Assembly: GCF_000315625.1 (NCBI RefSeq)
Contig: NW_005434655.1
Coordinates: forward strand, 680,807 to 744,806
Direction of reading: 5' to 3'
DNA length: 64,000 bases
Source of the DNA: Guillardia theta CCMP2712
Lineage: Eukaryota; Protista; Cryptophyta
The notes beneath the pieces were generated by a model. It ran no database searches and was not told the origin of the DNA. It was given only the letters and a program-made list of their open reading frames with translations. Below are positions 47,490 through 55,038 of this stretch, piece by piece. A program made the position numbers and the translations under genes. Every line of letters begins with the position of its first letter. Within the stretch, counting starts at the first letter, position 1.

Positions 47490-48161
47490 TTTGTCTGGGG
47501 TTCATCACTGAGTTTTCCCGGCATGCGGAAGTAGTGCCGACCAAATCACCCGTCAACTGTTTGAAAGTGAGAGACTTGGTACTCGCAGGCAAACAAGACG
47601 AGTTTTTCAAAAGCAGGGAATGAGGACAACTTCAGGGACAAGCTCGGCAAGAGTCTGTCGATCCTTGCAGGCTCCAAGAAAACCTCGCCCTTGAGTCTGC
47701 GAGGGAACAGTCCTGGTGCGTCGTGTCGAACGGCAGAAACTGACTTGAAAGTGATTCATCTCTCCGCTGCCTCCTGTCGCCTCCTCACTCTCCTCCACCC
47801 CAGAGCGGTATGATTGAAGCTGAGAACTGGACCCAAGGAAAGTGTAAGGTGCAAGCCATCTCATCAGTGAAGCTGATATGATCGGCCCTGACAGCAGAGG
47901 AGGCACGGAGGGCGTCGGGCACTCCGAACGCTGAGATGGAATCTGGATAGTGGCAACATCTTGATCGCTGCTCGCAAGTGAAGTCGGAGCAGGTTCTGTG
48001 CGAGGGCATCGAACAGAAGGAGAGCATGCGAAAAGGTGGGACAAGAGGTCAGCATGTAGCACAGGCAAGAGTGATTTTCATTCAGATTTTCACTCTTCAT
48101 GACCTGAACATCAAGACTTCCTCGCCCTCACAATGTGATCAGCCTTGCCACAATTAGCATT

Positions 48162-49949
48162 TCAGGCTCCGAGGTAGTCTTTCGCAACCTAAAGAGCTTC
48201 AGTGCGCACCGGAGCTTCAGCTGTATTTTCTCACCTTCAGCGCGAGATCTGCCATCCTCATGGAGTAGCCCCACTCGTTGTCGTACCATGCGTAGATCTT
48301 GACCATCTTCCCTTGAACGACCATGGTGGAGGCAGCGTCGACGATGGAAGACCGATCATCATTGATAAAGTCTGTAGAGACCAGCGGACGCTCCTCGAAC
48401 CCAAGAATGCCCTTGACGCGCACGATCAGAATCCCCTCATCTCACGCTCTGCTCTCCTGCTCAACCTTGAGCGGTGCGGTCTCGGAGGCCTCCTTGAGAA
48501 GGCGGTTGACCTCCTCTGCTGTCGTATCTCGGACGACATCAAAGACACAGTCTGCATCCTGCACGTTAGGAGGAAAGCTCCCCTCCCAGCAGGAGTTTTC
48601 GCACCTGTGATGGAGCCATTGCACAAGGGAACTCTGACAGCAAGTCCGTTCAGCTTTCCCTTGAGCTCAGGGAACACCTGGAAAAGTCATCACGATGAGC
48701 CACCATGGCTATGCTGACACCTCAGCGATGGCTGTTGCAGAGCCGGTGGATGTGGGCGAGAGGTTGACCATGCCTGATCGTCCTCTCCTGAGGTCCTGGT
48801 GGACGGAATGAGATGGGCAGAAGAACGAAGAAGAGGTGTGAGCAGGACGAGATCATGGAACATAGATGGAAGACAAGATGCAAGAGGATGGGATGTTTCA
48901 TACCTGCTTCTTGCCCGTGTCACACATGTCCACCAGAGTTTGTGTTCCAGTGACGTTGTGGATGGTAGTAATCATTCCTTTCTCGATCCCGATCTTCTCA
49001 TGGATGACCTGCAAGAAACTCATGTCCTCTCCTCTTCCTCCCCTCCCCTTCTTGCTCTGGCTCTTCCCCTCGTCCTTTCCTCACGTTTCACACCTTGACA
49101 ACAGGAGCAAGGCAGTTCGTTGTACAGGAGGCAGCAGTGCCTGTCAAAGCACAACCAAGATCAATCGCACGGCGCGGTGAGGCAACAGGGCAGTGTTACA
49201 GATGAAGTGATCCTTGGTCAACTTGTCGTCGTTGACTCCCATCACAACGTTGAGGACAGATGCTTCCTTGATAGGAGCACTTGGCGTACATCAGCTACTT
49301 GCCAACATCAACATCACCTCACCTGACCACCACTCGCTTCACCCCGCAGTCCTGGTAAGGCTGGAGGACCTTAGTGCTGAGGAAATGGCCTGTGCACTCC
49401 AAGACGAGCTCAACTCCAAGTTCCTTCCATGGCACTCCCTCGATGGTGGGCGATTCAGAGAAGGTGATCTTAATGCACAAAGTGAGGGAGTCAGGCCCAT
49501 GGCGTCCACGCATGCACTCTAGCTCGCACCACTTTGTCGTCAACAGTGAAGGATTTGCCATCAGCCGCTTCTCGGCATTCATGGTTCCATCGGCCATGCA
49601 CGGAGTCGAACTGGAGCATGTAAGCAGAGGTCTTGGCGCCTCCTTTGATCTCGTTGACATGAACCTTGAAAGCAAGAGTTATCATGCAGGCAAGTTTACA
49701 TGTGTGGAAACAGTGCTCATGGGAAAGGAGGAGATAGTTTGAAAACAACACCTACAGGGGGGAAACAAAGCAAGTGCTGTTGTTGGGAGTTTGATGTCGC
49801 AGACACGAGCCAACTTGAGCAACAGAAGCAGGATTGGGAGGGAGCAAGGCAGTTGTCACGCTCACAATCTCAATCTCCTTCATGTCCCAGGCGGCTCTCA
49901 TCGTCAGCCTGCCGATCCTGCCGAAGCCATTGATCCCCACTCGTACCAT
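48162..49949 (-). CDS. gap: Glyceraldehyde-3-phosphate dehydrogenase of the ArsJ-associated (Gap3/GapB-like) type; about 10 exons; no targeting leader
   Basis: [120 protein letters not shown] and [24 protein letters not shown] and EERPLVS are the subfamily-specific variants. Confidence 0.93.
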
Positions 49950-50265
49950 GCTGCCAACAAAGATGAAAGGGCTTGGCTAGAGCTTGCAGTAGGATGAGGG
50001 TTGGTGGAGGGTGAAGAGGGCGGGAGTGAGGTAGTCGAGGGGCGCAATGATCCATGCAGGCGTAGGGAAGCAAAGGCAAAGAGACGTAGCATGACCATTA
50101 TTTTTAGCAAGGTAACGAAAAGAAGTCTTTTCCAGGCAGCGGAAGGCTGTTAGACATGAGACAAAATAATAGGGATTTGACAGACAGGGAAGAGGGTAGA
50201 GCAGAGCAGAGCAAAGCAGAGCAGAGCAGAGCAGAGCCAAGAAGAAGAGGAAGGAAGAACTTCTT

Positions 50266-50365
50266 NNNNNNNNNNNNNNNNNNNNNNNNNNNNNNNNNNN
50301 NNNNNNNNNNNNNNNNNNNNNNNNNNNNNNNNNNNNNNNNNNNNNNNNNNNNNNNNNNNNNNNNN
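50266..50365. other. Assembly gap (100 N)
   Basis: N run; probably hides the 5' exons of the arsJ-like gene. Confidence 0.99.
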
Positions 50366-50548
50366 CTCTCCCCCTCCCATCTTCCGCTTTTCTTTCGTGC
50401 AAATGTCTAATCATCATATTCTTCTGTTCACCTCCATGCTGTACTCTCTCCCCGCCCTCCCGTGTCGTTTTTCTGTTCCGATCTTCCTGTCTCCTCCTCC
50501 TCCTCCTCCTCGCATTCATTCTGCTGTCGCTCAACTTCTCTGTCACAG

Positions 50549-53500
50549 TGGGGGATCAAGTGGACTCTCCTCGTCGGTCTCACATTGCAGCTGATGGGGT
50601 TGGGGATGCTGTTTGGTTGGCAGGTCTGAACCTTTTTTTTCTTGCGCATCACAAACAATGACATGTCTTCATTGTTGTTCTTGCGCATCACAAACAATGA
50701 CATGTCTTCATTGTTGTTCTTGCGCATCACAAATACTGACACGTCTTTCTTCTCCTGCTGACGCAACAGAATAGTTGGAGCAAGTCGACTGCGATCAGTA
50801 CGATGAATGTCATGTCCTTCTGCTCAAATTGACTGTCATGCTACAAAACAGTTTATGTGACCATCGCTCAAATGCTCTGCGGGATTGCAAAAGATCTCAC
50901 GAAACTTGGTAATGTCGGACTTGTTGAATCTTGTTGCAGATGAAGTGAAGTTTGATCTGATGATTGAAATGACGATGATACCCAGGGGGGAAGACCGTTA
51001 CAAAGCTTGTAACCCCGGAAGAAAAGCAGGTAGATGCACCTTGACTTCTCTTTGGAGGGAAGAATTGATGGTGATGGCTCAAGGGCGCTCTCTTCAAGCT
51101 CGTCTCCTACATCACAGGGTGGAAGAACTCTCTGAAAGGAGTTGGATACTTCATTGGTGACGCAATCTCTTCCTCCTCTCCTCCCTCCACTTCCTCCTCG
51201 CCCCTACCTCATATCTTCTGTTCCTCCTTCTTCCACTATCTTCCTCCTCTTCATCTTCCAGTATCTTCTCCGCCTTTTCCCGCCTCCATTCCCCCTCCTG
51301 CAGAGCCCCACCATCGCCTTGTCCTACCTTATTCTTCCACATCCTTCCCCAACTTTTCTCTTACCCCAACTCGCGCAGGAGCGGCGTGTCTGGGTGCGAG
51401 TGACGAGTGGGGCTTCTACCTTGCTCTAGGTGGAGAGGAGGAGATTAGGAGTGGAGGGTAGTAGGATGAGGAACTCATGAAACATGGGCAGGTGTAAACG
51501 TTTTCATGATCTTGTGCGCATATCCCTGGGCCATTGTGCGGTTTAAAGCAGAAATCTAATCATGCTGATATGCATGCAGATTGGCCTTGATAGCAATCTT
51601 GGAACTGCAAAATCGAAGAATGTGACCTTGAGGTTTGCGCACGTGAATCATGTTGAATATTTCTTATGTCTATGCTGGTGATATTGATGGAGTTGGACAT
51701 GACACAAAAAATTAGGATAGTGGGAGACCGTGTGATACTGAACATGATTTTGTAGGGATGCGCTTTTCTCTGGAAATCACAACCTGAACTGGTGACTTTG
51801 AATTTTTATCATGAGTATGTATGTTCTCATTGTACTTCAGGCTTTCGTTTGCAAGACTTTTCCTGTTTGCATCAAGAGACTTGTGGTTCGAAGTTCCTCT
51901 TCCCTTCTACCTGCGCGCTCCAGCTTGCACAAGTATATCAATATTGCGATTGTGATGATGATGTCAATAGAGGCTGTTGTGGTAGTGATGGTTCTGAGAA
52001 CCACTCTCTTTATCAGCAAACACTCAATGATAGAGGCGAGAACAGACGAACAGATGATGTGATCTTGTTTTGATAGGTTTGAATGCCACCTGCTCGGCCG
52101 ACATTGGTTGTGGAGGAGGAACAGAGTGTCTTCTTGTAAGATACAACTGTCTCTCCTCCAAATTTTGTTGGTAATGACAGCAACGCTTGTTACTTTCCAG
52201 ACTGGGGATCAAGGAATCTGTCAAAATGTGAATTCTGGCTGTGGAGGTCTCGGGCTGGCAAGAGTCACTGTGGGAGCATTCCTGGTATGAGATGATGCGA
52301 ATACGATGACGATGAGTGGGAGGGGTTGAAAGAGTCATGGAGGGAAAACACGGTCAAGAGAACCAAGAGCATGTGGGAAGGAGAACAAGAGCGATGTGGA
52401 GAAGAGGAGGGGCGATAAATGCAGGAGACAAGGAAGAGGGATGAACGGGCGGGGAGAAGAAGGACAGAGGGCGCAGATTGACGAAGAATGCGCAATGAAA
52501 TAAGAATGGATTGCGGAGGATCAGCTCGAAACGAGCTTTTTACCCACCTCCTCACTTTCCCGCAGGCGATCTACATCATTCTCTACGGTCAGATGCAGGC
52601 GTACACCCCTCAGCTCGTGCTCAATCCACTCAAACAATCTCCTCCGAACAAGTGGGTGGAGGTGAAAAACTCGAAATGAGACGAGGGACTAGATGACAAA
52701 TGTGCGCCATGATCAGGTGCTCTGGGGCTACTTGAACTGTGTACCTCCTTTTGTGCTGGCATTGATGACACTGGTTTCACCGGAGTTTCAGAATCAGGAA
52801 TACAACCAGGTAATGAAGTTGACAACATGGCAATGGAGGTGCCGGTGAAGCTGGAGACGATGATGACGATTATCTCAACGGATCATGCTTGTGATAATGA
52901 TTTTATTCATGTGCTGATTCCAGTTTTCAGATGTTGTCAACCATGATCGTTGGGATTGTAATCTTCGCCCTCATATTTGCCATCAATTCGTCAATTCACT
53001 CCTACCTAGTGAGCTCTCCTCTTCTCTCCTCTCCACCCCACCTTAGTGTCGTCCTCCCTCCGCCCCTCTCCTTACCTCGCTCTCTTCCTAGGTGGTGCGC
53101 TATGCAGAAGGTGACAAGGTCGCAACTAGCGTCGGCTTCTACTACATGTCCAATGCTGCTGGGAGGCTCATGGGGACCCTCGTGTCGGGAGCTCTCTACT
53201 CCTACATCAACCCGGAGGATGTGTCGAAGGGCATCGGGGCTTGCTTCGTGGCCGGTGAAGCTTTTACTCCCAATCTCTTTCTCTTGCTTGCTGTGCAATC
53301 TCCTTGACCTCGTCGTCGTCGCTTCTGTTTTCTTCTCGTTCTTTGCCATCGCTTCACTTGATCGTCGGAGTGACAAGCTTTTCCAGGCACCATTTCCAGT
53401 CTCCTCGCAACTCTCATCACTTACAAGATAAGAGATAATGCTAGTGGGTTGGCCTGCGGCAGGTGATCCACTCTCCTTCTGCTCCTCCACTCCAGCACTT

Positions 53501-53663
53501 GTCTTTCCCCTTCTACTCCTTTCTTCCCCCCTCATTCCAATGATGCAGCTGCGTGATCGTCCCTGGAGAGTTCGAAGAGCCGAATGCTCAGCAGGGAGGG
53601 AGGAGTAACAAGAACAAACATCAACAATCTTCAACAAACATCAACAATCAGTCGTCTGTATAG
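50549..53663 (+). CDS. arsJ: ArsJ-family organoarsenical efflux MFS transporter; about 16 visible exons, 5' exons missing in the gap
   Basis: Spliced exons give WGIKWTLLVGLTLQL, IAQMLCGIAKDLTKLGGKTVTKLV, LFKLVSYITGWKNSLKGVGYFIG, NWLSFARLFLFASRDLWFEVPLPFYL, VGAFLAIYIILYGQMQAYTP and FAINSSIHSYLVVRYAEGDKVATSVGFYYMSNAAGRLMGTLVSG. These are collinear with bacterial ArsJ motifs as I recall them (AQALSGIAKDLNKM, LTGSKNALKG, ARLFLFGARDVWF, NSSLHSYLI, VGFYYMANAMGRL). Confidence 0.92.
50639..50748. repeat. 39-bp tandem repeat (~2.7 copies) inside an arsJ intron
   Basis: Unit cttgcgcatcacaaacaatgacatgtcttcattgttgtt. Confidence 0.9.
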
Positions 53664-53667
53664 CTAA

Positions 53668-55038
53668 TCATTTCTTTACATATTTACACATGTACTGGCG
53701 TACAAGCCAGGATCCGCAACATTTACACATGTCTTCCTCCTTTTTGAGACGCATTACAAGCATCATCGAGAGCCCTGACAGGAAAAGGAGACGACATGGC
53801 TCTGACAGGAAAAAAGAAGATGTAACGATAACTGCTCTTTGACTTGGGGTCAGGCACTTGACCAGAGTTTTGCTTGCAGGTGAGAATTGTTCATTGCTTG
53901 CATCATTAGGGAGAAGAGAGATGTTATTTCCCATAGAAATGCAAAGAGGACGAGCCTCTGACGAGGAGTGCATGTCGCCCTTCAAGATGAACGAATTTCC
54001 GCTTTATATTCTGTACAAATGTCGACGCCATGATAACGACCGAGTGTCAACGCATTTCTCGAAAACAAATCGTGAAGGGTTTCGCTCATTGTAATTTGAA
54101 TGAGCTGAAACAATCACAACATCAGATCCATCTCTCGCATTTGAAATATGGTTATAGTTTTTCCTAAGAAGAAGAACAAAAAGCACCAATCCAGTGCTTT
54201 TGAAAAGAACACCTATCACCTTTAAGCAAAGCATCACGGTATGAGATTCCCAAAACTCAAAACAGTTCCGTTCAAAACAGTTCAAAATGTTTTGAGAACA
54301 AAATCCATGTGAGCTTTTGGTTTCGAGCTCCCCTCCTTCTATACAACCTGTCTACAATCTAGTTGGCTAACATCCTGTTAGCATGTAAGTGACATCATCT
54401 ACCAGTATGAGCACTTGAATCTCCGGCACGTCTCCCATCCCGAGTAGACTCTCCGATTTCAAGGGACGGTATCCTCTGCGTTTCATATCCATTACGTCAT
54501 TTCTGTCTCTTCGATTTCCTCGCAATCTACCTAACAATATCATTGCCTTGTACATCATTTGTAAGTTTGTGAGAGAGCAGAGTATACATCATCCTAGAAC
54601 TATTTACCTGTCTCATTCCTCAGAAAATGTGAGTATGTGTGTGTGAGGGCTCAGTCTCAAACGATTGGTAGCAACCTGAAGCAACATTTTACTCGGTTGC
54701 TCGCCCATAATTTACAAGGAGATGTAACAACTTCAAAACCAGTCCATCATCTTCAAAAACAGTCCATCAGATTTGTATCCTCATGGTGTCTAGTGCCTCC
54801 TGGCACACAGTTCCTTCAGAGGGCGTGAGCAACTATAGGAGGGGACCATTGACGACCACAATGTTACATGTCATCATCCAACACTGCAACCATTTGTCTT
54901 CATCTGCCCCTCAACTAAAGAGTGCAGAGTGAAATCATGCAGCTTACAGGTTACATGGGTCTCCTTGTTGCATCGTTTGATAACTAAGAGCGACTCATGA
55001 ATGTCTGCTGCCATCCGTCGCCATCACAATCTGCCATG
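53668..55038 (-). CDS. Probable multi-exon hypothetical protein convergent with arsJ
   Basis: Several short minus-strand ORFs with intron-like breaks; no motif recognised. Confidence 0.3.

Follow-up and report, generated by a model that had tools for sequence, protein, structure and literature searches.

We describe a pair of divergently transcribed, intron-rich genes in the nuclear genome of the cryptophyte Guillardia theta CCMP2712 that very likely represents one of two paralogous copies of an arsenate-detoxification module, composed of an ArsJ-type permease of the major facilitator superfamily (MFS) and an ArsJ-associated glyceraldehyde-3-phosphate dehydrogenase (GAPDH), here referred to as GAPDH3. 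The locus occupies positions 48162-53663 of the window, by which we mean the whole stretch of 64,000 nucleotides that was analyzed (NCBI RefSeq assembly GCF_000315625.1, contig NW_005434655.1, positions 680,807 to 744,806 of the forward strand). A eukaryotic, intron-rich and divergently arranged pair had been proposed here in a preliminary description made from the sequence alone, and both splice models and RNA joints bear this out. The public G. theta gene models at the locus are incomplete, with the 5′ exons lying in an assembly gap and the 3′ end frameshifted.

Gene models were built from six-frame translation combined with splice-site enumeration, and the G. theta assembly was searched whole for both protein families (87.1 Mb, 669 contigs). 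Public DNA contigs (X1) and RNA contigs from two studies (X7 and X8) were compared with the window over positions 48100-53700. Family assignment was based on the NCBIfam hidden Markov models (HMMs) NF033735 for ArsJ-associated GAPDH (cut-off 450 bits) and NF033734 for ArsJ (cut-off 400 bits). The genes of the window were scored as exon pieces, while whole-protein scores were obtained from the paralogue and from orthologues. One further RNA run (X18, 6% sampled) had near-zero depth; its few reads at 48261-48292 resemble cross-mapping from other GAPDH transcripts and the run was set aside.

Structure and expression of the gene pair

The features of the locus are as follows (TM, transmembrane helix; UTR, untranslated region).

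48162..49949, minus strand: coding region of GAPDH3, a GAPDH of the ArsJ-associated type (splice models, RNA joints, NF033735 exon matches, trees)
49949-49866, 49664-49530, 49468-49323, 49279-49200, 49140-49094, 49008-48904, minus strand: GAPDH3 exons 1-6 (models and RNA)
48795-48721, 48677-48605, 48551-48466, 48411-48235, 48188-48162, minus strand: GAPDH3 exons 7-11 (models and RNA)
49950..50077, minus strand: 5′ UTR of GAPDH3, minimum extent (X7 RNA contig colinear from 49864 to 50077)
50078..50548, no strand: divergent intergenic region and hidden 5′ part of ArsJ, including the N gap 50266-50365 and CT-rich intron sequence at 50366-50548
50198..50237, no strand: high-copy (GCAGA)n-type simple repeat at the left gap edge (word depth in a DNA run)
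50549..53608, plus strand: ArsJ-type MFS transporter, visible part from TM3 to the C-terminus, ~418 aa (models, RNA joints, NF033734, tree)
50549-50623, 50770-50797, 50852-50908, 50986-51029, 51084-51156, 51379-51429, 51492-51535, 51580-51632, 51756-51791, plus strand: visible ArsJ exons 1-9
51841-51932, 52077-52135, 52201-52284, 52566-52655, 52717-52809, 52931-53008, 53092-53254, 53387-53462, 53549-53608, plus strand: visible ArsJ exons 10-18
51841..52284, plus strand: end of TM7, ~35-aa six-cysteine loop and start of TM8, in three exons (alignment)
53597..53598, plus strand: assembly error, one G missing (present in every X1 DNA contig and X7/X8 RNA contig)

GAPDH3 runs from an ATG at 49949 to a TGA stop codon at 48164-48162, and its 11 exons encode a product of 344 aa. 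The ten introns (43-201 nt, all GT-AG) are each present as a joint in the RNA contigs of X7 and X8. The RNA also corrected one donor site, placing intron 2 at 49469-49529 with the gain of one Val. The product begins right at the Rossmann motif, and an in-frame stop codon ten codons upstream of the ATG indicates that there is no targeting presequence. The catalytic Cys (SCTTNC), the His (TTIHN) and the NAD-binding GxGxxG motif are intact in the spliced protein, which also contains every one of the ArsJ-associated GAPDH motifs listed in the preliminary description.

The location and plus strand of the transporter gene are as previously described, while its extent needs correction at both ends: the 5′ end is missing from the window and the 3′ end that had been given, 53663, results from an assembly error. 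The visible part comprises 18 exons and 17 GT-AG introns (44-281 nt), which are spliced in the RNA contigs as modelled (at least five joints among the matches listed, and 14 further joints). It begins at the equivalent of residue ~75 of bacterial ArsJ, in TM3, so that TM3-TM12 of an expected 12 helices are visible and TM1-2 fall in the gap; the copy on contig C86, described below, and a loose end of RNA show that the corresponding exons exist. At the other end, the extra G found after 53597 in all DNA and RNA contigs moves the stop codon (TAA) to 53606-53608 and identifies the annotated end at 53663 as an assembly frameshift. The corrected C-terminus reads ...QQGGEE, compared with ...QQGAEE in the C86 copy, and the apparent Asn/Gln/Ser-rich tail of 20 aa extending up to 53663 is an artefact of the missing G. 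One ArsJ intron contains three tandem copies of a ~45-nt unit (50640-50740).

Family placement of GAPDH3 and ArsJ

For all four GAPDH3 exons tested, NF033735 was the best model. The paralogue on C86 (P0304, 94-95% identical) scores 484.3 bits, above the cut-off of 450, and on the same model a cryptophyte orthologue (P0305) reaches 497.3 bits. Compared with a Pseudomonas plasmid GAPDH that is annotated as ArsJ-associated and encoded just upstream of arsJ, the window protein has 59% identical residues; the value is 73% for the GAPDH of a cluster of ArsJ, phosphoglycerate kinase (PGK) and GAPDH genes in Edaphochlamys, as opposed to 38-43% for the three other GAPDHs of G. theta. In a maximum-likelihood tree, it falls together with the Edaphochlamys protein within a clade of 21 bacterial arsJ-adjacent and three eukaryotic GAPDH3 sequences (support 100/99), while the other G. 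theta GAPDHs, from contigs C27, C6 and C9, group with the GapA type. A wider tree unites all eukaryotic GAPDH3 sequences (SH-aLRT 90) in a sister clade of the bacterial ArsJ-associated GAPDHs. Its members come from cryptophytes, a haptophyte, diatoms, Ectocarpus, Tribonema, Pyramimonas and Edaphochlamys, and among the cryptophytes the two G. theta copies pair with each other in a group that also includes Rhodomonas. Model matches and trees thus agree with the earlier assignment of this enzyme to the ArsJ-associated subfamily, apart from the host's other GAPDHs.

The exon pieces of the transporter match NF033734 and no other model, and the family-invariant motifs AINSSIHSYL and VGFYYMSNAAGR are kept. 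Its closest relative, a protein of the cryptophyte Baffinella frigidus, is 70% identical and its sister in the tree (99*). Full-length relatives of 50-54% identity occur in diatoms, diplonemids, green algae and the hemichordate Ptychodera flava; identity amounts to ~51% with Edaphochlamys ArsJ and to 33% with bacterial ArsJ. All sampled eukaryotic ArsJ sequences, including that of Edaphochlamys, are split by a 100* branch from proteobacterial ArsJ, the bacterial sampling consisting of gamma- and alphaproteobacteria; a locus search with a mixed ArsJ alignment returned gammaproteobacterial loci only. Within the eukaryotes, the G. theta and Baffinella proteins join those of diatoms and diplonemids in a starred clade that excludes the green algae. 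Scored as whole proteins, the orthologues of Baffinella (P0154, 344.8 bits), Edaphochlamys (P0042, 363.7 bits) and Fistulifera (P0224, 354.8 bits) have NF033734 as their sole match, with E-values of ~1e-103. Because these scores lie below 400 bits, we file the gene under a eukaryotic ArsJ-like clade and not under the bacterial equivalog; with that restriction, the identification of the MFS gene as one of ArsJ type is upheld by the exclusive NF033734 matches and by the tree.

A six-cysteine loop between TM7 and TM8 is common to the ArsJ proteins of G. theta, Baffinella, diatoms and diplonemids (P0154, P0026, P0151, P0224, P0170 and P0225) and is absent, among the aligned ArsJ sequences, from those of green algae, Ptychodera, Tribonema and bacteria. 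This insertion, a rare change, ties the ArsJ genes of cryptophytes, diatoms and diplonemids together. Judging from MFS topology, the loop would face the non-cytosolic side.

A second pair on contig C86 and the gap in the window

The whole-genome family searches revealed a second head-to-head GAPDH3/ArsJ pair, free of gaps, on contig C86. Its GAPDH is named hypothetical protein GUITHDRAFT_158520, Guillardia theta CCMP2712, by NCBI. The two loci have intron positions in common but not intron sequences. DNA identity between their exons is 72-88%, and the encoded proteins share 94-95% (GAPDH) and 88% (ArsJ) of their residues. Short homologous patches in like order just outside both genes make the flanks colinear. 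The two pairs are an old block duplication, and the gap-free state of the C86 pair, together with the homologous flanks, supports the adjacency of the two genes across the gap in the window. In the C86 ArsJ gene, the exon for the MLSTMIVG... helix is 1 nt short, and its frame stays open only if another donor is used, at the cost of half the helix. Intron 1 of the same gene (~C86:273215-273640) holds a long array of short-unit repeats in which one frame is open for 316 codons.

The N gap at 50266-50365 is not continuous sequence. To its left (49950-50265) translation revealed no MFS-like frame, and to its right the stretch 50366-50548 looks like intron. An RNA contig extends beyond 50547 in the 5′ direction by at least 255 nt of sequence that is absent from the window and that ends in codons for NLLAGIAGAK, followed by exon 3 (WGIKW). 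Contigs from the independent DNA run X1 end at 50227, inside the (GCAGA)n repeat, and at 50366, leaving the gap unclosed. The word depth of this repeat, ~54,000 against ~70 in the flanks, means that it is very abundant in the genome and the likely cause of the assembly break. A second copy of the first TM exon was not found in the whole assembly, the sole copy lying on another contig. On C86, the interval from the GAPDH ATG to ArsJ exon 3 measures 2.63 kb (1.38 kb separating the two start codons, followed by exon 1, a 590-nt intron filled with tandem repeats, exon 2 and a 322-nt intron), as against 0.6 kb including 100 N for its equivalent here. For this reason, the gap hides the two 5′ coding exons of ArsJ, corresponding to ~114 aa in the C86 copy, and probably ~2 kb of sequence.

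Linkage of the two genes in bacteria and eukaryotes

All 79 informative bacterial loci have gapdh immediately before arsJ, with both genes in one orientation. The Edaphochlamys cluster has the order ArsJ (plus), PGK (minus), GAPDH (plus). In the xanthophyte Tribonema minus (L131), a GAPDH3 gene and an ArsJ-like gene are arranged head-to-head with ~200 bp between the called genes. The genes are not adjacent in a pedinophyte, Nitzschia, Phaeodactylum, Ectocarpus, Fistulifera and Ptychodera, nor in two diplonemid-like genomes and two further eukaryotic contigs. No PGK-like gene is found by either G. theta pair: genome matches to PF00162 are confined to contigs C144, C133, C2 and C5, with none on C19 or C86.

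With the bacterial gapdh-arsJ operon the G. theta pair shares the two-gene unit, a GAPDH at 59% identity and a transporter matching NF033734 only; the bacterial genes differ in being co-directional, intronless and contained within ars operons, and bacterial ArsJ is ~120 aa shorter than its eukaryotic counterparts. As in the green-algal neighbourhood, the same two core proteins are encoded by adjacent, intron-rich nuclear genes, but the G. theta genes lack a neighbouring PGK, are head-to-head and duplicated as a pair, and their ArsJ belongs to a separate sub-clade carrying the six-Cys loop. The Tribonema pair is likewise head-to-head and its GAPDH3 belongs to the same eukaryotic clade as that of G. 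theta. Its ArsJ-like protein, on the other hand, has no Cys loop and belongs with metagenomic proteins in a divergent clade, so that a shared origin of the head-to-head arrangement does not follow and the two arrangements may not be homologous.

The preliminary description had also held that a bacterial operon was kept as a eukaryotic cluster. Given the head-to-head arrangement here, as against the co-directional genes of all 79 bacterial loci, and the unlinked positions of the genes in most other eukaryotes with both, a linkage dating back to the transfer is plausible and not demonstrated. Co-regulation of the two genes and descent of their linkage from a bacterial operon are points that we infer. 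It is possible, if somewhat doubtful, that the pair is real and its linkage nevertheless no relic of a bacterial operon, the genes, acquired once or separately, having become neighbours secondarily in the Guillardia lineage, or having remained together by mere chance until copied as a block. Such a history would agree with an orientation differing from that of both bacteria and Edaphochlamys, with the separate positions of the genes in the pedinophyte, Nitzschia, Phaeodactylum, Ectocarpus, Fistulifera, the diplonemid-like genomes and Ptychodera, and with the fact that the sole other head-to-head case found, in Tribonema, involves an ArsJ-like gene of a different, divergent clade. It accounts less readily for two gene trees that each show one eukaryotic clade next to bacterial arsJ-linked sequences, as joint transfer predicts, and for an adjacency that recurs in three distant eukaryotic lineages, which is improbable by chance for two specific genes. 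At the opposite end stands a broader scenario that we regard as rather unlikely, according to which ArsJ and GAPDH3 entered an early alga jointly as a bacterial operon and then moved, as a linked and co-regulated unit, into several supergroups by descent and by endosymbiotic or lateral transfer. In that case, both Guillardia pairs, the Tribonema pair and the chlorophyte cluster of ArsJ, PGK and GAPDH would be remnants of a single, very ancient eukaryotic unit, held together by selection against a labile or toxic intermediate.

Several of the other eukaryotic loci have features of their own. On the Ptychodera flava chromosome CM083794.1, at 25.05 Mb (L024), an intronless ArsJ-like gene of 529 aa has no called gene within 10 kb; it groups with a pedinophyte sequence and may represent a lateral transfer into an animal. 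The ArsJ-PGK-GAPDH cluster of Edaphochlamys debaryana (L022) is flanked on both sides by genes for fusions of a HAD-phosphatase and glycerol-3-phosphate dehydrogenase. In two samples of the European Nucleotide Archive, ERZ25333188 and ERZ25333217 (L019, L020 and L132), long contigs carry nearly all called genes on one strand, and ArsJ and GAPDH3 are intronless and on different contigs; the closest named relatives of these contigs are the diplonemids Sulcionema and Diplonema.

Predicted function

In Pseudomonas aeruginosa, the gapdh-arsJ pair confers arsenate, As(V), resistance (Chen 2016, as cited in PMC7826186). In line with a caveat already raised in the preliminary description, an ArsJ-GAPDH3-PGK3/4 neighbourhood has indeed been reported in green algae (Foflonker and Blaby-Haas 2020, PMC7826186). 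In that study, a joint bacterial origin of ArsJ and GAPDH3 was proposed, the two genes were found to co-occur across green algae, and Chlamydomonas mutants in arsJ (Cre07.g354150) and pgk3 (Cre07.g354250) were arsenate-sensitive. In Cyanidiales, arsJ occurs alone and is monophyletic with that of other eukaryotes (Cho et al. 2023, PMC9812998), and in the cyanobacterium Nodularia, ArsJ and its GAPDH are induced by phosphorus limitation (PMC9846622). The accessible parts of the text and supplements of PMC7826186 and PMC9812998 contain no mention of Guillardia, Tribonema or Phaeodactylum, and our literature search found no further paper on ArsJ in algae.

By homology with these systems, arsenate would enter the G. 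theta cell via phosphate transporters, after which the cytosolic GAPDH3 would use it instead of phosphate on glyceraldehyde-3-phosphate, yielding 1-arseno-3-phosphoglycerate. The ArsJ-type permease would then extrude this compound before it hydrolyzes. The RNA contigs show both genes to be expressed and spliced; their transcription is divergent, presumably driven from a shared upstream region. The enzyme chemistry, the substrate and the membrane location attributed to the G. theta pair are predictions by homology.

Arsenate export is the most likely predicted function of the pair, and several observations weigh against it. Neither G. theta pair has a neighbouring PGK3/4 gene, a partner that the Chlamydomonas system requires. 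The eukaryotic ArsJ-like proteins, at 345-364 bits, miss the bacterial equivalog cut-off of 400 and carry insertions, and hence their substrate could differ. In the C86 ArsJ gene (L016), a difference of 1 nt breaks the frame of one TM exon (C86:276726-276802), which may reflect a decaying copy or an assembly error. Finally, the 5′ exons and promoter of the window copy of ArsJ are unread.

An improbable alternative is that the module does something other than export arsenate, for instance with GAPDH3 as a cytosolic glycolytic isoenzyme and the MFS protein moving another phosphorylated or acidic metabolite. In its favour are the low equivalog scores, the lineage-specific six-Cys loop and long N-terminal tails of the eukaryotic ArsJ-like proteins, and the retention in GAPDH3 of every catalytic residue of a normal GAPDH. 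Against it stand the arsenate sensitivity of the Chlamydomonas arsJ mutant (PMC7826186), the three conventional GAPDHs that G. theta possesses besides, and the co-occurrence of GAPDH3 and ArsJ not only in green algae (PMC7826186) but also, as found here, in cryptophytes, diatoms and diplonemids. A scaffolding mis-join across the N gap, to which the unclosed gap and the break of independent DNA contigs at both of its edges might point, and bacterial contamination are both highly improbable and were rejected, in view of the gap-free paralogous locus on C86 with its like order, orientation and homologous outer flanks, the 27 visible, RNA-confirmed spliceosomal introns, the cryptophyte sister sequences in both trees and the attribution of the C86 GAPDH to G. 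theta by NCBI.

What is new is the cryptophyte lineage, the duplication, the head-to-head form devoid of PGK, the shared Cys loop and the corrected gene models; the kind of system was already known. The pair would extend to cryptophytes a bacterial-type arsenate export route so far shown for green algae alone, and both of its genes are widespread in algae with red-derived plastids and in diplonemids, and occur even in a hemichordate genome. Because marine phytoplankton take up arsenate under phosphate scarcity, a GAPDH3/ArsJ route, if common, would matter for arsenic cycling in phosphorus-poor waters. The recurrent linkage in distant eukaryotes also provides a small, clean example in which to study the persistence of operon-derived pairs in eukaryotic genomes.

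A functional parallel exists in Pteris vittata, where GAPC1 and OCT4 likewise combine a GAPDH that arsenylates with a transporter that moves the product (Cai 2019, as cited in PMC7826186). The proteins involved, a plant GAPC and a member of the OCT4 family, are unrelated to GAPDH3 and ArsJ and the similarity is convergent, the plant sequestering the product instead of exporting it.

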